Shown piece by piece: positions 2,600 to 59,791 of a stretch of 64,000 nucleotides of DNA. The position numbers were made by a program, and so were the translations under genes. The notes below the pieces were generated by a model. That model was not told the DNA's origin. It did not search any database and saw only the letters and a list, made by a program, of their open reading frames with translations. Every line of letters begins with the position of its first letter. Position 1 is the stretch's first letter. The stretch lies in NCBI GenBank assembly GCA_964188305.1, contig OZ076887.1, one strand, 5' to 3'. Source of the stretch: Podarcis bocagei. Taxonomy: Eukaryota.

Positions 2600-4087
2600 C
2601 CCAGCTATATCAATCGGCAGGGAATTCCAAAGTATATTATGCACTGCCACATTAATATATTAATTTCTTACAAATGTGGAACAGATATTATGTGCCACCT
2701 GTAAAAGTGGTAGTTCCGCAGATCAAAGCAATTGAGTGGGCATATATGGGATGAAGTGATCTCACAGGTAAACTGATCCTGAGTTAAGGGTTTTATATAG
2801 CAATAGTAAACACCAACCTGGCCCAATAGGCATCCTAGACCTTTTAAGCTTAGGAATTTAGAGTACCATAGACCAGAAGGAATGTTTGGTACCAGGAACT
2901 TATCAGGTAAGGATTTTAATACCAAAACAAATAAAAGTTGGAGACTCTCTAATGTTGGTCTTCAGAACAGTAGCATAACTTGCAGTTTTGGGAGCAAAAA
3001 ATGAGTGCTGAAATATGTGTAAGAGTGTTGAGAATTGAGTATGGACACCAAATCTCTGTGCATCTGTCAAGCTTGCTGGGTAGCCTTCAACAACAGCACC
3101 TTCCTTTGTAAATATGATCGGGGTATAAATGATGTGAAGACCGTAAAGGGTAGTACACCAAAAAGTCTGTAAGACTTAAAACTCTTAACAAATCAATATT
3201 GTGGATTCAAAAATAATACAGTCTCTTTGATTTAGAGGTGACTGGTTTGTGATGGTGTATGGGGCTGGGCATTTCATTGGAAGGAAAATGTTCACAAGGT
3301 AATAGGAGTAGCTGAACTCTTTCTTAAACAAAGCAGGTAAATTCTTCTGCATTCCAGACTAGCTAAATCACTGAAATACAAGAGAGGGCTTACCAATGAG
3401 TCAAGGGGCCACTTCTCACATTACTTTTTCCTACAGAAGAACTGGACCTGTTGGTGTGGAAACTGCAGAAAATGCGTGCCTGCTTTATCTTGAGATTAGC
3501 TAGACATATTTCTATTTTACCACTGAGACACATCTGGTTTCCATCAAACATTTGCTTGTCAGATGCTAGTCCTAGCAGAAAATAGGAAGTATTTTTTTGG
3601 ACATTCTCATATTACAGCCCACATGTTTCTTTTTTGCTCTTTCTGACATACTTTTGACTTCTGGAGGGTCTTGATGAGAATCAGAAATGTCCCTAGTTTA
3701 CAATCATGGTTTTCAGGGCAAGTGCAAACCATAGTTTCCCAGGTCAGCTATAATGTTAAATTGGTTTGCTGTAAACTAAGACATAATTCATTAAGCAGAG
3801 CACAGTGGAGAGAGGACTACACAAGCATAATGCTTGCTTCCTTAGTGCATAAATGCTTAAGAGAAGACCAAAAGATCAAGCTAAAGGCCTATGTAGTACA
3901 GCACTCCATGTCTTCACAGTGGACAACCAGATGCCCACAGGAAGTCTGCAAGCAAAACCTGAGCACAACAGCTCCCCCCCTCCTGTGATTCTCATCAATG
4001 AGTATTTAGTGGCATACTGTCTCCAACCATAGAAAATAAAGGGAGAAAGGTAGAAGACATGGAAGTAGAAGGTAGAAAATATAGCCA

Positions 4088-4250
4088 ACATAGCCAGTAG
4101 TCATCGATAGCCTTATCTTCCATTAACTTATCTAATTTTTTAAAAAAGTTATCCAAGTCCATGGCTATCACTACCACTTGCCAGTTAATTCCATAGTTAA
4201 CTATGTGCTTTGTGAATAAGTACTGTACTTTCTTTTGTCTGTCCTGAGAC
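4088..4250 (-). mobile_element. CR1 LINE 3' remnant
   Basis: YLFTKHIVNYG...VVIAMDLDNFFKKLDKLMEDKAIDDY resembles the CR1 ORF2 end (FFTQRIV.LWNSLP..VV.A..LD.FK..LDKFMED..I.GY). Confidence 0.7.
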
Positions 4251-5848
4251 TTCCAGCCTTCAGCTTCATTGGGAAAGGCTCTCTCCAAAAGTAGCTTTAA
4301 ATAGTCAGTGACCACTTGAAGGCTTGCTTTTTTTGGAGGAGAGTGTCATGAAGAGAGCATAGCTGACTGGCAACCTGAGTTTGAGCAATCCATGCTGCAA
4401 TATTTTGTTGCAGCTTGTTAATTGTAGTTTTAAATGTGATACATTCACCATGGGAAAAATAGTCATGGCATAATGCTGTTGCATCGTTGCCTATGCCAGT
4501 CTTGGGTTTGTATTTTATTTTTGCTAAGGTTAGGCACAAGCATGTCAATGGTTTTCAAATTATTCATTGGAATTCTGGGTTAGAAGTTATTGGGATTGTT
4601 CAGTGAGAAGAATAGTAATGCTAGATAGTGTCTGAAGGACAACTCATTCGTCATTACTCGCCTTCCTCTACAGTGCACACTCTGGGCCAAATGAAATGTA
4701 AAACTAAATGTGTGAGTGTTCCTTTTTTTCTCCCTTTTTAAATAACAGCCTCTGGAGATAGGTGGGATTGGGATCAAGGTGCAAAGGAAGGAGGTTTCAG
4801 CCTTTCCCTTCCATTATGGATCCATGTGAGAGAAGCTTTCTTCCTGGGTTTAGTCATCAGGACTATGACTGTGATAGGAATGGCATGGTGAATCCCCTCC
4901 GTGCTGATATGATCCTGATATCCCGAAGCTATTTAGAAAAAAACTAGACCTGTTAAATGTATTCACACATTTAACATAATGTTCACACACAATGCTGAAC
5001 CAAACCATGGTTTATTGTATCCACAGCTATGGATTAAGCAAAATGTTAGACATGTAATTTGCTTGTCTGCAATCTGACAAATTTCATGCATTTGAACTTT
5101 AATGAAAACGTTCCACACTATTTGTATTTCATTGCAATTTGATCCCACTGTGTTCAAATCCCCCCCATCCTGCACCCCAAATATGTATACATAATTGCCA
5201 ATTGAATATAATGTTTCTTGCATCTGATGCAGTGGTTTCCAGCCTATGACATACTATGCCATAATTGCCATAATAATTGCTTTAGCATTTGAGGTGTTAC
5301 AAGGTTGCAAGGTTCTTCACTGAACTTTCAACCATGGCATTGAACTGTATATATGAGATTAAAGTTCCCAGAGGAAAGAGTCTGGTTGTTGGAATATTCT
5401 TATTTTTGTATATGGAAAGTGATTCTGGAAATTTTTCTCCTTTCATTTAGTAGGCATATAGTAAATATGAGAGAGAGGTATGTTACACACCCTCCTTAAT
5501 CTAAAGGACTTCCAGTGATCTGCATAAAGCCCTTTGTAACAATAGGGGATGTGGTTTGGTCAGAGGGTGGAGATCTCATTGTTAAATTTAGGAATATAGC
5601 CTGCCCACTCAATGAGCAGCTAAGGAGGGGATGGGCCACAGAGAGCTGTCTGTCAAGGACCAGTCTGCTGAAACACAACTTCAGTCTGCCTTTTTCATTA
5701 GACACTGAAGGACTGAAACGTGTTTCTGTTAGCTCTGCTTCCCTCCTACCCCCCCTCCCTCTGATTGCACTGTGACTTGGAGAAATAAAAATAACGGAGT
5801 GTCTTGCTTTGAGGAGAGGAAAATCCAGGTTGCCAAAGGGTAGAGAAA

Positions 5849-5873
5849 ATGCTGGGAACTATCACTCTAACAG
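5849..5873 (+). CDS. AKAP12: AKAP12 beta-isoform first coding exon (MLGTITLT)
   Basis: ATG CTG GGA ACT ATC ACT CTA ACA G|gtatga matches the mammalian beta N-terminus MLGTITIT. The phase-1 donor is in frame with the large exon (25+7100 nt = 2375 codons). Confidence 0.9.
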
Positions 5874-8800
5874 GTATGAAATGTTTACATTTTGAATTGT
5901 ATTGATGGTTCTGTTGTCTAATTGTGATGGTGATTCTATGCAGCAGCACTTTTGTCCACGACTCAAGCATGTGACACACATATTGGAGCAGTTCTTTATT
6001 AAGCCATGTACAGCATAGTCTATACATGTCTACCTGGAAGTAAATCCCATTGAGTTCAGTGGTGCTTATTTCCGGATAAGTGGGAAAAGTATTGCGGCTA
6101 TAATAACTTTTAAAACTTATAATTTATGTTTAAATAGGAGTGGGGAAGTGTTTTTGGATTAAAATCCTAAAGCTGCAGCTCTATGCACACTTATCTAGAA
6201 AGCCTGTTGCAGTTACATTTACTGCTGCGTAAATATGGTTGAACTCAAGCATCTTTATGTGGTTGAGTTAGGTCAATTTCCCTACATGTTTACGCTTTAA
6301 ATTAGGAAGTTTAATTTATAGAAAAATGTATTTCAAATGTAACAGTATTTCTTAGATTACAAAGTACTTTAGGATTAGTGATTTTATATTGGCAGGGGTA
6401 CTTTTTATTCTCTGGCATCTTTTCTACTCACAGAAGCATGCTTGTTTTTGATCTTTCAAATGCCAGAGAATTCTGTACTTATAAGTTTAAAAAAAGTTTC
6501 ATTTCTCCCCCAACATTTACTCTTTAGTCATGTCATTTAATTACCATATTATTTCACTTAATTTACACTGTGAGTTTTCTCTCAGCCATTTGATCCTAGG
6601 TTTCATATTTTTTTGCAACCTCCCATGTCTTAAAAGTAAACTTCCTTTTCCTTAATTTCCATTATCCTTGACCCCAGGCACAACCTTTCTACATAAATAA
6701 TGGAGCAAACATCTGTTTTAACTTCTGAAGTTCAAGTGATCACTGCTCACTTCATCTTATTCATTAAAAAGTGGACTATGTATCTGCTCATAAACACAAA
6801 ATCATTAAATTGGAGTGAATTAATTAGTGTGCTTGGAGGGAAGCTATAACCCCCTCTGCCCCCAAACTCCTTTACAACTTAATTTTGGAAACAAAGACCT
6901 TTGGAAACTCATCAGTATATTGCTGAATGGTTGGGAACAGTTGCTGAAAAACAATACTTAGAAGCACCAGGGTTTAGACACTTCATTTTATCTTTCCTGC
7001 TGAGATGCTTGTTGAAACATTCCATCATTTATAGGGGGGGGGGGAAGAACAGTGATGGTAGACAGTATAGTATATTTATTGCAATATAGGCAATAAATAT
7101 TTTCAGCTTATGCAAATGTTTTACTGCATCTCTGTGAGATTTCCCCTCAGTTTTGCCTATTAGTCATTTTTGTTTGATCTTTTCTCATAAACATTAAATA
7201 GTACTAGCACCAACAAACAGAACTATGACTTTTTTCTTTTCTTTTACAATATCAGTGCTGTGGAATGTATATGCATCCCATGTGGACAACCGAAAGAGAC
7301 CAATTCTGTTTTGACTTTACTGTAACTCGTTCAGAATGCTAATGTGTTTATTATCATTCTGATAGTAAATTGGGACATCTTAAAACTCCATATGTCATAT
7401 ACAGTTATATGCCAAAATGGCTTCTCTTACAGTTGTAAAGTGCTGGTTGAACTGACATCACCACAGAGGTCAGTTCATTTGTTTAATGTAGGTAAAATAC
7501 ATTTTAAAGCTTGCCCTGCATAGCCTTTACTAATCTCAATGTAACTGTATCCAGCAATTGAATTCCTATAACAAAAAGCCAGCTTATACTTGGAGTGAAG
7601 AAGTATGGCAGTTCAAATTCATTCTTAAATTGTTCAGTTGGACCAGCTGTTGTTAGACTCATGACAGTGAGCAATTTTCTTTCCACATTAAATATGTTGT
7701 AACACTAGGTACAAAATAGAGCTGTGAATTTTTTAACAGCAGTTGGTTTAAACCAAATATTTCAAGGCAATGATCTGCTCTCAGTTAAACACAATCAACG
7801 ACACTGATGGCAGTGGGATTAACTATGAAATAGAGAGACTATTCTGGTCTTAGATGTTTAAATATGGAATAAACTTAAGTTTTGTTTTAAAAATTGTTTG
7901 GAGACTTTCAGTGGCTAGAGAATTTTGGAACACTAGAGACCCGGGCGTGTATGACATATATCTGATGGATACAGAATGTAGAGAATTCATGGAGAAAATC
8001 CAGGGCAGGGCAGCAAATCCGGGGGGGGGGGGGGAGAGAGAGTCAACCAGCTCCAGATGTTGACATGGCTGACTGCAAGCACATGAGGTGTTTCAGATTT
8101 AACTGTTACAGCCTGAGAAATACTTTCTGTCTTCCAACTACAAGAAATGGTATCTCTCCTTTCTTGTGAGAAGGTGGGGGAAACGGAAAAAGTATGAAAT
8201 ATTTGTTAGAAGTAAAATGTATGTGTAACACTTTTTAGGTATTGTGGCAGTAGACACTCACTTGATTCTATTCATGTTGGAATGGATATTTTATCTTCCT
8301 AATCAGGGAATCGTCATAAAACAACTGCTTTAAGGCCCAAGCTATAGAGTTTTCCCTAATTACACATTTATTTAGAGTAATAAGGAAGTGTTTTCTTTTT
8401 ACATTGTATGTCAAATGACTGTAAATGTTGGACCTACATTTCTAACAGCACGTTCTAAGTAAGATGAACTCTATAGTACCAACCACATCAGTATCAACTG
8501 TGGGAATAAATGAGTGCCTGTGTATTATACGAACAGAAGTTATAGTGAAGAGAGATTGAGTACAAGTACTTGCAACAACTAGTAGCCATAGATATAATGT
8601 GTATTCCCATGACTCATCCAGCCTGTGGAGTGGGACTGGATGAGTATCATAATTTTGAATGTGCATGTTCTCATTTACACCACCTGCATGCGTACCTTGC
8701 CAGATCTTCCTGGCTTGATCAGAGGACTAAGAAAGGGTGCCTTTTGCTCTTTGTTCTGCTTCTCATTCAGTGACAGAGAAGGCTTAAATCATTCTAATGC

Positions 8801-30638: not shown

Positions 30639-32004
30639 TCAGTCTAACAACACTGCTTCCTGTTCTTTTTTGATAGAGTCTAAGACCGAATGGTCACTCT
30701 CTGTGGTTTCAGCATCCCCACCACCTAGCAAAATGGATCTATCCTCGTCTAGAGTAAAGACAGAGTTCTGACTTTGGCACGAATGTTTGACGACTTCATT
30801 AGGCGTAGAGAACGTTTTGTCACACAAGTTGCATTTATAGGGTTTGTTGGTCTGTACCAACATGTTGTCCATTTGGTTGCCTTCCTCAAAAGTACAAAGC
30901 TCCAGAGTCTGCTTGTCCACCATGGTGTAGGTGTCCATGCTTTGGTTTAGACATACATGTCGAGCAGCTTGATTGGCCCGGCAGAAGCTTTTGTCACAGG
31001 TGCTGCACTTGAAAGGCTTGCCAGTATGAATGTACATGTGCTCCCTCCAGTGGCTTTTCTGAATAAATTTGCGCCCACAAATGGAACACTCGTACTTCCG
31101 CCTTTTAACTTCCCTTTCTTGATCTGCTTGCTCCAAGTTGTCTATGTCAGCAATGTCAGAGGGTGGCGGTGTTTCAGCCTGCGGTTGTCCATCAATGATG
31201 GGTGAATCCGAGATCTGCTGCAGCTCGCTATCGCTAATCATTCCAGCTTCAGCAACTTCCATAGAATCTTTTTCAGGAGCGTTATTACAAAGAGATAAAG
31301 GAACGCTACTTTCCCCGTGCTGGCTTGATGAGAAAGGCACCCCTGTGTGAATCTGGAGATGCTCACGCAAACTACTTCGCAAATTGAATCGCCGACCGCA
31401 GAGGTGACAAGCGTAGTATTTGGGGAAGCTTCCGTTCTTTTTCATAATGCTTGGCTTGACGTGCGCAATTGTGAGAGAAGCAGGCTGATCATCTGAGGAG
31501 GAGGCTTCCATGTTGTTTTCATCACCTGGAGGAGAAGGATGAGGAGCAGTAGAAACCAGTTCAGGAGACAATGGAGGCTGTAATGAGTCTGAAGTGGACA
31601 TATTTGTTGGGGGCACTTGAGGCAGCGGTGGTGGTGGTATCTGTGACAGTTGGGTGGCTTCATGCATCTGTTCTTGATTTGCTCTTGATGACTGTGGCCT
31701 TGGTCCTCGAACAGGTTTGTCAGTTGTGGCGGCTGCTTTTGTGGAATTTCTTGCCTGGTGATCCGCAATCTGAATACCGTATAATGAAGATGCCAATGGA
31801 AAAATCTGCTCCGGGTGTGTAAAATTTCCTTGACTGGCAAGGCTAGCCTCTTGAATAAGCGGGAATGCATGCAGAAACTTTATTCCTTGCTCCAATCGAA
31901 CAGGATCGATGAGCTGAGGTGCCATTTTTCCAGTGTACATCAAATGTAAGAGATAGCTGAAAATATCTGGCTGTATGTCAGTTGCCTTCAAACGGACACA
32001 TTCA
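30639..32004 (-). CDS. ZBTB2: ZBTB2 last coding exon (end of BTB domain, linker, four zinc fingers)
   Basis: Acceptor ttctttcag|TGAATGTGTC; ECVRLKATDIQPDIFSYLLHLMYTGK. Two C2H2 fingers (CHLC..HLQIH, CSIC..HMYIH) and two atypical C2HC fingers (CSTC..HVC, CNLC..HSC). Ends IKKEQEAVLLD*. Confidence 0.96.
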
Positions 32005-32179
32005 CTGAAAGAAATTTCAAAACAGTATTAAAGAGGAAGATAAAATGCTTCTGAAGGATTACAATAATTAAGTATACAACTAAGTGCACAATTTTAAGTA
32101 TACAAGAATGCAATCCTAGACATGTTCATATAAATAAAATAAATCTGTTATCATGGTTTAGGCATTACTTCTACTGCTG

Positions 32180-32181
<2 letters not shown>

Positions 32182-32219
<38 letters not shown>
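32182..32219. repeat. (TA)n microsatellite, left flank of the Penelope element
   Basis: Direct reading. Confidence 0.98.
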
Positions 32220-32221
<2 letters not shown>

Positions 32222-32301
32222 TTTCGTAGATTTTCACGGGTACAGGAATGCAGGTTTTGGTGTCTTCGGGTGTCTTCCCGTGTAAGAGTTGGGGTGTCTA
32301 G

Positions 32302-32339
32302 GCGACGTTTCGACGAGGTCTCACTCGTCATCTTCAGGC
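32302..32339 (-). ncRNA. Second copy of the minimal hammerhead ribozyme motif (sense to ZBTB2 pre-mRNA)
   Basis: Exact reverse complement of 33634-33671. Confidence 0.75.
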
Positions 32340-32729
32340 TGGTGCTTTCGGCTTCTTGTTACTGGAACAGAGCAGGATCTCAGTGTTTGAGTTCCTATAA
32401 ATACTGTTGAGGGGGTGTGGTGTATAGCCTCCAACGTTCTGGGCAGAGAGGAAGTTCCCAGGTTAGTGTGTCTTTTCTTCTTTTGTTCATTAATTACTTG
32501 AGGGATATCTTGAGTGATTTCTTGAGTGATATTCTGAGTACCACTTAGGAGGGTCATTAGGTGTGGATTAGTTGCTAAAGCTTTCGTGTCTTGACCTCTT
32601 GACCTTGTGAAGAGTTTTTTCTGAGAAGATGGCTGTACTGCACTTAGTTGTGCTCTGGCTTGGCTTCGTGTATAGGGGCGAGCTGTGGTTTTGTGCCCTG
32701 TGCCAGCCAGATCTGTGTAGGGATTGCAG

Positions 32730-33652
32730 ACCAAAAAATAGCCAATATCCTCAGAAACCCCAAAGATAAAATCCAGTTAGAAAACCAAGGGGTCTATGAA
32801 ATACCCTGCAAAGTCTGCCCAGCCACGTACATTGGACAAACAAACAGACGAATAAATGCACGTATCGCAGAACACAAGAATGCCGTCAAAAAAGAAGAAA
32901 AAACTTCCTCTCTTTACCAACACATGAAAGAAACAGGACACGAAATTAATTTTTCAGATTCCAAATTGCTCTTTAACATGGAACACCACCACAAGAGAAT
33001 AATCATGGAAGCCATCGAGATAGAGAAACACCCTCACAACATGAACAAGCGTGACGATACGTCCCGCCTGCCAGACATCTGGAAAATAGCCCTCCCCACA
33101 AAAACCGACACCAGAACCAGAGGCACACAGAACGCCATCTCCAATCAACCACACCAGACCCAAACCCAGACCCTCTCCACAGATAAATTACAGACACCAT
33201 CCAGTAGCCAAACCATAGTGGCACCTCCGGATGCTGCACCCCCCTGCAATCCCTACACAGATCTGGCTGGCACAGGGCACAAAACCACAGCTCGCCCCTA
33301 TACACGAAGCCAAGCCAGAGCACAACTAAGTGCAGTACAGCCATCTTCTCAGAAAAAACTCTTCACAAGGTCAAGAGGTCAAGACACGAAAGCTTTAGCA
33401 ACTAATCCACACCTAATGACCCTCCTAAGTGGTACTCAGAATATCACTCAAGAAATCACTCAAGATATCCCTCAAGTAATTAATGAACAAAAGAAGAAAA
33501 GACACACTAACCTGGGAACTTCCTCTCTGCCCAGAACGTTGGAGGCTATACACCACACCCCCTCAACAGTATTTATAGGAACTCAAACACTGAGATCCTG
33601 CTCTGTTCCAGTAACAAGAAGCCGAAAGCACCAGCCTGAAGATGACGAGTGA
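32730..33652 (+). pseudogene. 3' part of the Penelope-like ORF: GIY-YIG endonuclease plus a ~195-aa T/Q/S-rich C-terminal extension
   Basis: ILRNPKDKIQLENQ-GVY-EIPCKVCPAT-YIG-QTNRRINARIAEH...SSLYQH...IIMEAIEI...NMNKRDD shows the GIY-YIG signature with conserved R, H, E and N. No stops or frameshifts, but 5'-truncated at the inversion junction. Confidence 0.9.
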
Positions 33653-33671
33653 GACCTCGTCGAAACGTCGC
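33634..33671 (+). ncRNA. Minimal type I hammerhead ribozyme motif (Penelope pLTR)
   Basis: GC-CTGAAGA-T-GACGAG-tgagac-CTCGTC-GAAA-C-GTC^GC: CUGANGA and GAAA core boxes, 6-bp stem II, palindromic ACGU stem III, GUC cleavage triplet. Stem I is only ~2 bp. Confidence 0.75.
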
Positions 33672-33720
33672 CTAGACACCCCAACTCTTACACGGGAAGA
33701 CACCCGAAGACACCAAAACC

Positions 33721-33723
<3 letters not shown>

Positions 33724-33780
<57 letters not shown>
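33724..33780. repeat. (TA)n microsatellite, right flank of the Penelope element
   Basis: Direct reading. Confidence 0.98.
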
Positions 33781-33782
<2 letters not shown>

Positions 33783-34049
33783 CTCTGCAAAATGTGATCT
33801 AATTTATTCCAGAATATATACCTTCAGGGCAGCAGTTCATGAACTTGATCCACAAACTAGTTAGGAGTGAAATCCACAGGATTAGCACTGTAATCGGGTT
33901 AATTGATTTGTGGATGAAGCTGGATGTTTAGTTATTGTGATTTATAAAGCAACTCACATTAGGCTGCCTTAACACTTTCTAATTCCTTCAGACTATTTTA
34001 CCTTAACTAAATACCATTTTTAAAGTGTATTCTTTTATAACTACTGTAC

Positions 34050-34222
34050 CTGCTTTGATGAACAAACAGCATCTTGAAATAGTTGGAAAAAGAGGCAAGG
34101 ACAGATTTGTGTGCCTTGAAGTAAACATCACCAATAGCAACTGTACAGTCACACAGGAAACCAAACTCCCGTTGAGCATTGAGCTGCTGCAGAAGAATCA
34201 GTCCATGGTTGGCTAAATCCAT
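34050..34222 (-). CDS. ZBTB2: ZBTB2 first coding exon (BTB/POZ N-terminus)
   Basis: [57 protein letters not shown]. The acceptor puts the exon start at 34232; donor CAG|gtacag. 173+1366 nt = 513 codons (512 aa). Confidence 0.96.
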
Positions 34223-34772
34223 CTTTTAAATTCTGTAAAGCAAATATACTTGTTTAAAACAATATCCTCAAACATACTGTTACAGATCTGGGGTAAACAG
34301 AATTTGGGAGTAAAGGGGTACCCATAACTGCTAGGGCTAGTGAATGTTAGAAATAAATAAATGGTAAAATTTAGATAATATTTGAAGTATTGAAGGGAAC
34401 ATGCCCAACATTAGGAAATTGCCCTGGGGAAAAGTGCAATCAAGGTGCAATTACTAGACAATGGCCAGTGATTGACCCTGTTCCTGAGCTCAGGGTATAT
34501 AGCAGAGTTGGGAGGGGGAGGTTACAGGTGGTGTAATGTCACTAGGGCTGGGCAATATATTGCCCAAAACCAGTTTGAAGTCCATATCATGATACTGGTT
34601 TCATAATTTTTGACCTGACTATGATGTGTGTGTGCGTGCACAAAAAAACACGATGCGGGGGGAACTGTGAACCCAGCCAGTGCCTGAACAGAGCTCCATC
34701 CTTTCATGATGTTAAGCGGGTTTATTTACACATAATGTATATACAACCTGGAGCCTACAATGGAGGAAGTTT

Positions 34773-36599: not shown

Positions 36600-38400
36600 T
36601 GATCCTGGTTCATCGCTACTGCGCGCAAACAGAAATTATCGAAATAAAACACTTAAGAGCTTTAAGGCGCCGAATAAAAGTGGCAAATCCCGTCTGCATC
36701 CCGGCCAGGAAGGAAGCGGGGGAAAGGAGCATTTTGCAAACTAAGCGGCTGCTCGCTCGGCAAGGAAGCAGACCGTGCGGCTCCTTCTCTAAACAACCCA
36801 CAAGAGCCAGCGAGACTCCGAGGCGGCGCTCATAGGCGACAGCCGGACGGAGAGAAATCAACAGCAACCAATAGCGGAGGAGCGCCGCAACCTTCCTTTT
36901 AGCTCCTCACCCGGCGCTTCCCGCGGTGAATCACGGGGTGCCTGCGCTGACGGCGTTTCCTATTGGCTGCCCGTCGGTGGGCGGGCGGGGGAAAGAGGAC
37001 AGGCAAAGCCAAGCCGCCGCAGCCATCGCGCGCGCCCCCGGGCACTCGCAGCCGCAGCTCCGCCTACGCCACGCCCCCTGCCCTCCCTCCCCCTCCCCTC
37101 GGCGACGCGAGGTCTCCACGTGCGCGTACACGCAGCTCCCGGAGGGGGGCGGGGCGTACGCGAGGACGGACGGCGGCGCGAGGCGACGTAAGCAGCGCGA
37201 GCGAGCGAGCTGCGGCGCCTAAGGCGCGCGAGAGACGGGATCCGCCGCTGTCGCCAGGGCCGCCTAGGCTGCTGAAGAGACGCAGACGGAGCCGCCCACC
37301 ATCAACCCCCCCGCCCTCCCTCCTTCTCGCTCCCTCCCTCCCCCTCCCTTTCCCGCTCCGCGCGGCTGCCTCAGCGCCCGCCCCTCCCCCCTCTCTAGGC
37401 CGGGCTGCTGCTGCTGCTGCCGCTGGTGAGAGAAAAAGCGGGGAAGGCCGCTGCGTAGCTCGGCGGCTCCATGGGAGGGAGGGAGGGAGACCGGAGGGAG
37501 CGGGGAAAGCAGGCGCACAGGGGCCCGAACCGAGCCCAGCTCACGCTGACCCCGCGGGCCAGGGCTGGTGGGAGCAGAAATCCCCCCCTCGGGTCCTGAC
37601 CGGGCGACCTTCCCACCCGCCGACCCCGGGGGGGGGCAACAGCCTCCACCGTCTCGAGGCCGCCGCCGGTTAGTCGCGAAATCCCCCTCAGGTGCTCGGG
37701 CCGCCCTTTCCCTCCTTTCGGGTCCCGACCTGGCCTAGCCCAACCGCCAGCACAATGGTGGGCATGGAGCGGGTGGGGGAGTAGCCGGACGCCTCGGCCT
37801 CCTCCGCCGCCGCCGCTCACGCTTCCCCCTCCCTCTCCCCCCCCCGCCGCCCCGATTCACCTTGTGTATGCAGGGGGAGCAGACGGAGCTCACCTGGCTC
37901 GCGCTCTCCGGGAGCCCCCGCCGCCGCCTCGGCGCGCGCCCAGCAGCAGCAGCAGCAACAACGGAGTCGGAGACGGCGGCGGCGGCGGCTTTTCCTGTCC
38001 GGTTACGTTAGGGTCACATGACCGAGAGCGGAGCAGAGAGGCTGTGGCGAGGAGCCCCCGCCGGGGAGAGAGGCAGAGAGGAGGGGGAGGGGAGGCGGCG
38101 ACGAGCGCTGTGGCGGCAACAGCAGCAGGAGCCACCCCTCCCCCCTCGCCTCCTTCCCCGCCCGCCTCGCATTTTCGCGCGCCGCTTCCAGCGAGCAGCA
38201 AGCGGAGGCCGCACCGGGCTCGGGGCGGGCGGGCGCTCTTTTGCAACGGCGGGGAGAGAGGGAAAAACGAAGCCGGGCCTGTCGGCTGTGGCTGCTTTGG
38301 GCTGTAATGCACCGACATAGGCGGCGTACTGGAGCGAGAACTGCATCTTCAAACATTCGCTCCATGCGATGTTCTCTCCCCCGAGCAGTTATAGGAGGGA
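36600..38400. promoter_or_regulatory. CpG island, ZBTB2 promoter region
   Basis: Abrupt rise in GC and CpG density against an AT-rich background. Contains GC boxes, CCAAT boxes (~36868, ~36962) and the E-box GGTCACATGACC (38012-38023). Confidence 0.9.
37894..38100 (-). other. ZBTB2: Probable ZBTB2 non-coding exon 1 (5' boundary unknown)
   Basis: Donor CAG|GTGAGC on the minus strand at 37894/37893 inside the CpG island, with an alternative AAG|GTGAAT at 37861/37860. GC-rich, triplet-repeat-rich 5'-UTR-like sequence. Confidence 0.5.
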
Positions 38401-59453: not shown

Positions 59454-59791
59454 GGGACGCGGGTGGCGCTGTGGGCTAAAGCCTCAGCGCCTAGGGCTTG
59501 CCGATCGAAAGGTCGGCGGTTCGAATCCCCGCGGCGGGGTGCGCTCCCGCTGCTCGGTCCCAGCGCCTGCCAACCTAGCAGTTCGAAAGGTACCGCTTAC
59601 CAGCGGGAAGGTAAACGGCGTTCCGTGTGCTGCGCTGGCTCGCCAGATGCAGCTTTGTCACGCTGGCCACGTGACCCGGAAGTGTCTCCGGACAGCGCTG
59701 GCCCCCGGCCAATAGATGTGAGATGGGCGCACAAACCCCAGAGTCTGTCAAGACTGGCCCGTTCGGGCAGGGGTACCTTTACCTTTACCTT
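59454..59791 (+). mobile_element. Sauria SINE (tRNA-derived), young CpG-rich copy
   Basis: 5' GGGACGCGGGTGGCGCTGTGG (A box), GGTTCGAATCC (B box) and (ACCTTT)n tail. Confidence 0.88.

Follow-up and report, generated by a model that had tools for sequence, protein, structure and literature searches.

The window, a 64-kb stretch of OZ076887.1, contains the sole intron that interrupts the ZBTB2 coding sequence (32005-34049, minus strand; 2045 bp between splice sites read from the sequence), which lies between the exon carrying the ATG and BTB region and the large last exon. The ZBTB2 exons were searched singly, exon 3 by reference; translated exon 3 shows 99% identity to P. muralis ZBTB2 and 98% to that of Zootoca vivipara, mammalian ZBTB2 proteins are also among its matches, and the start of the BTB region is in the upstream exon (ORF 34007-34222, minus strand). 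An insertion of 1506 bp occupies 74% of this intron (1599 bp and 78% if the flanking TA tracts are included), in line with a preliminary description, made from the sequence alone, which had placed a Penelope-like element (PLE) in the ZBTB2 intron and put its share at about three quarters of the 2045 bp.

The insertion consists of two 5'-truncated PLE copies lying head to head, with their 3' ends outward and abutting directly at 32729/32730 (Table 1). A repeat search finds two arms of 482 nt each that are 100% complementary and separated by a 514-nt spacer; paired arm positions sum to 65973, and the ORFs of both arms translate to the identical peptide CNPYTDLAG...PEDDE. A frame of 334 codons (32648-33652, plus strand) is open throughout, and its mirrored part (32321-32734, minus strand) encodes the same peptide. 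The left, inverted copy extends 28 nt past the right copy and these nucleotides have no counterpart on the right side: read in the sense of the element, the left copy terminates in ...CCTGCATTCCTGTACCCGTGAAAATCTACGAAAGC and the right copy in ...CCTGCAT, each followed by (AT)n, and counted from the ATG at 33642 the ends fall at +112 and +84 respectively. The final 1-2 nt (AT) of the sense copy could be assigned equally well to the microsatellite. No target sequence lies between the two copies at the inner junction and no microhomology is evident there, as judged against L001, another copy of the element from a Logan run, which runs on upstream via ...GCACCA ahead of ACCAAAAAAT.

When the whole window was scanned, the (TA)n flanks measured 38 nt on the left and 57 nt on the right, and the sole other long TA tract is 12 nt. 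There is no other copy of the element within the 64-kb window by blastn, and tblastn with full-length PLE proteins finds no reverse transcriptase (RT) in it; these proteins match only 32729-33649 and its mirror, and the homology starts exactly at 32729-32738. The perfect inverted arms, the uninterrupted GIY-YIG frame in the spacer, the missing RT and the (TA)n on both sides were all features of the preliminary description and are borne out here.

Table 1. Features of the PLE insertion in the ZBTB2 intron. Positions are those of the window; a point marks features without a strand.
Feature	Position	Strand	Content or evidence
Left (TA)19 microsatellite flank, target sequence	32182..32219	.	P. muralis empty site is also (TA)n/(GATA)n
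Inverted 5'-truncated PLE copy, 510 nt	32220..32729	-	C-terminal tail coding region, hammerhead, first 112 nt of next ORF; tblastn, P0151 residues 234-368 on 32728-32324
28-nt PLE 'tail', left copy only	32220..32247	-	Next-ORF positions +85 to +112
Left arm, perfect 482-nt inverted repeat	32248..32729	.	Repeat search
Putative minimal hammerhead, copy on ZBTB2 pre-mRNA strand	32302..32339	-	Descriptor scan
Sense 5'-truncated PLE copy, 996 nt	32730..33725	+	Endonuclease, C-terminal tail, hammerhead, first 84 nt of next ORF; 95.5% identical to L001
GIY-YIG endonuclease domain with CCHH motif	32732..33127	+	Conserved residues all intact
C-terminal extension of same frame, 174 codons	33128..33652	+	Q/T/P/S-rich
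Right arm, perfect 482-nt inverted repeat	33244..33725	.	Repeat search
Putative minimal hammerhead, element sense strand	33634..33671	+	CUGAAGA-U-helix II 6 bp-GAAA-CGUC
Start of next ORF unit, 84 nt	33642..33725	+	ATG 33642 is hammerhead A9-U-G10.1
Right (TA)n microsatellite flank	33724..33780	.	

The endonuclease and the clade of the element

A phmmer search with the 306 residues encoded by the element against 1.84 billion representatives gives 6135 matches at E<=0.001, including 687 at E<=1e-10. In the long matches (P0039, P0035, P0030, P0140, P0143, P0144 and P0129) an RVT_1 domain is followed by the C-terminal region homologous to the query, an order of domains that is the ORF layout of PLEs. 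The Pfam search proposed in the preliminary description does return a GIY-YIG match (E 3.8e-4), but at 21.1 bits it falls short of the gathering cut-off of 22.6; the identity of the element as a PLE therefore rests on the 6135 phmmer matches, proteins with both RT and endonuclease (EN) among them, and together with the intact CCHH motif these agree with the original assignment. A phmmer search of the PDB with the EN domain gave no meaningful match. RT is missing upstream of EN in the 5'-truncated window copy, while the long EN homologues carry RVT_1 there in the same ORF, and the truncation of the copy is no argument against its membership of the PLEs.

Alignment of the EN with ten relatives shows that the GVY, CxxC, YIG, the Arg residues, HxxxxxH, the EAIEIE block and the Asn are all intact in the window copy. 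The residues invariant across the ten relatives are G20, Y22, C26, C29, Y33, G35, R39, R44, E47 and H48, followed by H64, H70, E93-E98 and N105. The CCHH motif, a mark of PLE endonucleases (PMC8557442), has its two Cys between the GIY and YIG and reads GVYEIPCKVCPATYIGQT ... QHMKETGH.

The lack of a Cys-rich knuckle ahead of the GVY motif had been taken earlier to favour Penelope/Poseidon over Neptune. The window copy itself is too short to show this, as it retains only 20 residues upstream of GVY and the state of its own knuckle cannot be read, but the argument holds for relatives that extend further upstream: a CX2-5CxxC Zn-knuckle is absent from the 60-200 residues scanned upstream of the GIY-YIG in P0151 (90% identical), P0154, P0155, P0004, P0035 and P0039. 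The knuckle-less linker of these relatives places the family, as far as their sequences indicate, in the Penelope/Poseidon type and not with Neptune or Nematis.

Past the EN, the frame remains open for another 174 codons, across the whole of the supposed pLTR. It has 0 stops between 33128 and 33652, against 8-10 in the other two frames (P(0) ~0.001), and ends at a TGA in loop II of the hammerhead, 10 nt past the next ATG. The ...HQPEDDE end is also present in P0151 and in P0024, the latter ~40% identical, and many copies have a -1/+1 indel pair near 33353.

Coding pieces derived from PLEs also occur in annotated gene models, namely P0003, P0157 and P0161. The first is P. muralis TSNAX (UniRef A0A670HLY4), in which the 105 C-terminal residues correspond to the PLE tail frame (97% identical), and the other two are the Ahaetulla prasina P2Y purinoceptor 1 isoform X3 and an Erythrolamprus reginae olfactory receptor 10A7-like protein, respectively. 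The PLE pieces in these models are either exonisation or annotation errors.

Hammerhead motifs and the ends of the copies

Each arm contains the sequence CUGAAGA-U-GACGAG-(UGAGAC)-CUCGUC-GAAA-CGUC, and a descriptor scan of the 64 kb matches at exactly these 2 places, with 0 matches in 200 shuffles. The motif comprises a CUGANGA box, an additional nucleotide ahead of G10.1, the G10.1-C11.1 pair, a helix II of 6 bp, GAAA and the palindrome ACGU; its helix I is just 2 bp. The minimal hammerheads of PLEs are described as having the G10.1-C11.1 pair and a long helix II, and with palindromic 15.2-16.2 and helix III missing they should act as dimers (Cervera and De la Pena, PMC4209133). The arm motifs match these features and are putative minimal hammerhead ribozymes. 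No Rfam hammerhead family matches 31500-34500 at E<=1, where the matches are to low-complexity TA only; we do not count this against the motifs, since minimal hammerheads lack the helix III that the Rfam models expect. The hammerhead core is identical letter for letter in L001, in L004 (a contig filed as a metagenome, with a protein ~40% identical) and in L005, from the agamid Phrynocephalus forsythii, and the adjoining sequence differs.

A9, the extra U and G10.1 together make up the ATG at 33642, and the distance from this start codon to the predicted cut site is 25 nt; the predicted cuts fall after 33669 on the plus strand and after 32304 on the minus strand. Both here and in L005 a CACGGG...CCCGUG stem is predicted to close an A/C-rich loop, weakly favoured by z scores of -1.75 and -2.84, and the +84 end falls inside the predicted loop.

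These features can be compared with those of Poseidon_Ac (PAc), a Penelope/Poseidon-clade PLE of Anolis carolinensis (Arkhipova 2006; Frangieh et al. 2024, PMC11167929). Reverse transcription of PAc begins at two adjacent internal start sites, of which the main one lies 111-118 nt from the beginning of the ORF, in an A/C-rich stem-loop, and the stretch between the two sites is the optional 30-40-nt tail of PAc genomic copies; its targets are AT-rich, and its protein cleaves and extends both strands in vitro, in contrast to R2 or L1 (PMC11167929). PAc and the window element have in common a C-terminal GIY-YIG EN with the CCHH motif and no upstream Cys knuckle, a minimal hammerhead in which A9-U-G10.1 is the start codon of the ORF with the cut site ~25-26 nt past the ATG, copy ends at two sites ~30 nt apart and roughly 85-115 nt into the ORF, and an AT-rich target of which both strands can be used. 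The ends in the window at +84 and +112 thus stand beside the PAc start at 111-118 and its tail of 30-40 nt.

The two elements nonetheless belong to different families, with ENs only roughly one-third identical as judged by eye on short motifs, and because of this difference the motifs of the window element are not found in the Poseidon_Ac supplement. The PAc hammerhead given there (PMC11167929 supplement) reads CUGAGGA-U-GCCUGC...GUGGGC-GAAACGUC, so that helix II is GCCUGC/GUGGGC in PAc and GACGAG/CUCGUC in the window; by eye it differs on both strands and the pairing is kept. The ends of the ORFs differ too, the PAc ORF stopping 126 nt ahead of the next ATG and the window frame overlapping the next ATG by 10 nt.

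Integration of the two copies

The copy in L005 (positions 3645-5917) has the same head-to-head layout, with ~470-nt arms at 97% identity and (TA)n on both sides, and is older. Here a tail is present at both ends, each terminus reading ...GAAAATCTACGAAA[G/A]C then ATAT, and in one of the hammerhead copies a C-to-T change has produced a G-U pair in helix II. As the layout is the same, the head-to-head architecture recurs in nature. L001 ends in CCTGCA and then (TA)n, as do many contigs, whose loose ends fall at 32248. Copies elsewhere thus also adjoin (TA)n (L001, L005 and the contigs) and the preference for (TA)n is strong; with the tracts on both sides of the window element and a (TA)n at the P. 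muralis empty site, this upholds the (TA)n targeting proposed earlier.

The typical architecture of PLE insertions is said to be covered also in an account by Evgen'ev and Arkhipova from 2005. Typically there is a 5' truncation and an inverted 5'-truncated copy abuts the 5' end, forming inverted repeats (Craig et al. 2021, PMC8557442); a tail of 30-40 bp is present at one end only, the hammerhead lies in the pLTR, and there is a bias towards microsatellites (PMC8557442, Fig. 2). The window insertion is like these in its inverted 5'-truncated copy, one-sided tail, hammerhead and microsatellite target, and unlike them in its tail of 28 nt rather than 30-40 and in the truncation of both copies; it has no RT and no complete pLTR-ORF-pLTR unit. 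The preliminary description had called the inverted 5' copy a known feature of PLEs, and it is indeed among those described as typical as well as recurring in L005.

We put at about 80% the probability that the locus is a dead-on-arrival insertion of a Penelope/Poseidon-type PLE into a pre-existing (TA)n, in a Podarcis-like lacertid, within the intron of the ZBTB2 coding region. The anatomy of the insertion, taken with the in vitro data on Poseidon_Ac, a different family, suggests a single event with priming on both strands. A dimeric RT-EN protein would cut both strands of the AT-rich (TA)n target. The left top-strand 3'-OH would prime a cDNA at the +112 site, with synthesis halting after 510 nt, and the right bottom-strand 3'-OH a cDNA at the +84 site, with synthesis halting after 996 nt; the start sites would lie in the A/C-rich stem-loop, at ~84 and 112 nt within the ORF of the following tandem unit. 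Different start sites for the two cDNAs would leave the 28-nt tail on one end only, and the two incomplete cDNAs would then be joined directly at 32729/32730.

There is some resemblance to the twin priming inversions of L1, reportedly set out by Ostertag and Kazazian in 2001, in which the 3'-OH of the second target strand is said to prime a second cDNA and an inverted 5' segment becomes joined to the 3' segment in one event. The inverted part in L1 reportedly comes from another stretch further upstream in the same RNA, with no sequence duplicated, whereas both cDNAs in the window begin at 3' initiation sites of the element, so that 482 nt are present twice. Snap-back (fold-back) synthesis was considered and rejected, as it would leave the 3' end unduplicated and would invert the cDNA at its 5' end, with a spacer that is short or missing. 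We also rejected the element as the sole source of the (TA)n, given that P. muralis has (TA)13 at its empty site.

The strong preference for (TA)n and the very many copies of the family make repeated strikes on one tract conceivable, and the two copies could then be independent insertions, in opposite orientation and at different times, into the same (TA)n. We consider this unlikely, since no (TA)n or other target is left between the copies and their junction is direct, since arm identity is 100% across 482 nt where other copies differ by 1-5%, and since the head-to-head layout recurs in L005 and is typical of single PLE insertions (PMC8557442).

The locus is a clean natural example that agrees in detail with the in vitro model of PLE integration, with two RT starts, both strands and an AT-rich target. 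It illustrates known biology: the architecture, the ribozyme, the tail and the target preference have already been described for PLEs, and neither the kind of element nor the mechanism is new.

Age of the insertion and its setting in ZBTB2

The orthologous site in P. muralis (L002, from GCA_964188315.1) consists of (TA)13 followed by (GATA)n, without the PLE. The flanks of the two genomes differ at 0/177, 4/269, 6/1366 and 2/639 positions, or 12/2451 in all (~0.5%). In Zootoca vivipara (L003) the differences are 18/184 in the left intron, 12/269 in the right intron, 31/1366 in exon 3 and 11/648 downstream, and the site contains neither the PLE nor a dispersed repeat present in P. muralis, and no microsatellite. 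With the PLE absent and the (TA)n present in P. muralis, the element must have inserted into an existing (TA)n, after the lineage of the window split from a genome that is ~0.5% different.

The preliminary description had judged the insertion very recent from the identity of the arms. Since both arms would come from one event, their identity does no more than bound the age; the lack of any difference between them sets a 95% upper limit of ~1.5-4.5 My, if rates of 2e-9 to 0.7e-9 per site per year are assumed. A recent insertion is nevertheless supported by the sequence comparisons, in which the empty sites in P. muralis, with flanks ~0.5% different, and in Zootoca carry the case and the former is stronger evidence than arm identity. 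The locus shows very recent movement of this PLE family in lacertids, present at this site in one genome and absent from another ~0.5% different, and the insertion could serve as a presence/absence marker.

Word depth, summed across the element, is 1e5-1e6, compared with 14-94 for the single-copy flank (four runs, three organism labels), values that are not copy numbers, and many contigs of the family in the four sequencing runs resemble one another at 99% or more. This PLE family is very abundant and is likely to be currently active.

An older insertion whose arms were kept alike by gene conversion, or a simple 5'-truncated copy that was later duplicated in inverted orientation, is less probable still than two separate insertions. 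Conversion can occur between close inverted repeats, so arm identity by itself gives no date, but a site that is empty in a genome only ~0.5% diverged speaks against great age, and the left copy cannot have been copied from the right one because its 28 nt are missing there.

PLE structures cause assembly problems (PMC8557442) and such structures call for long-read confirmation. The Logan contigs of the four runs stop at the TA tracts and bridge neither the flanks nor the inner junction, so the structure of the locus is that of the assembly alone; the contigs speak neither for nor against the junctions or a filled or empty site, and the left-flank holes in X1, X6 and X3 carry no weight. A false inverted duplication of a high-copy repeat beside a microsatellite would yield perfect arms through collapse or duplication error, with junctions that reads leave unconfirmed, but we regard it as the least probable of these alternatives given that the outer ends differ as the biology predicts (tail and no tail, at two known RT start sites), that the spacer is unique and in frame, that the flanks are the correct orthologous halves of the intron, and that the independent L005 genome has the same architecture.

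For the host, the single insertion into (TA)n favoured here is presumably neutral. In the ZBTB2 pre-mRNA (minus strand, 32248-33725) the arms are predicted to form a perfect 482-bp stem around a loop of 514 nt, with the 3' splice site ~240 nt further downstream, and this stem would bury the one hammerhead that reads in the sense of the pre-mRNA (32302-32339). A more ambitious proposal is that the insertion is a lineage-specific, possibly segregating allele whose hairpin and sense-strand hammerhead, lying in the pre-mRNA of a conserved transcription factor, could measurably change how ZBTB2 is expressed, whether by dsRNA editing or processing, by slower splicing or by cleavage at the ribozyme, and that it is, separately, a natural single-event record of two-strand, two-site priming by a PLE dimer; we think this improbable.

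A second recent presence/absence difference lies within the same intron. At the edge of the TA tract P. muralis has a GC-rich dispersed repeat of ~355 bp (L002:1443-1800) with a TTTGCAGATATA-like flanking duplication, in which ARAGORN finds no tRNA. The window lacks this repeat, and its first 26 nt recur at 59764-59789 on the minus strand with 2 mismatches. Upstream of the ATG exon on the ZBTB2 strand, the region 36900-38300 is very GC-rich with long open frames on both strands, and looks like a CpG-island promoter with a non-coding first exon.
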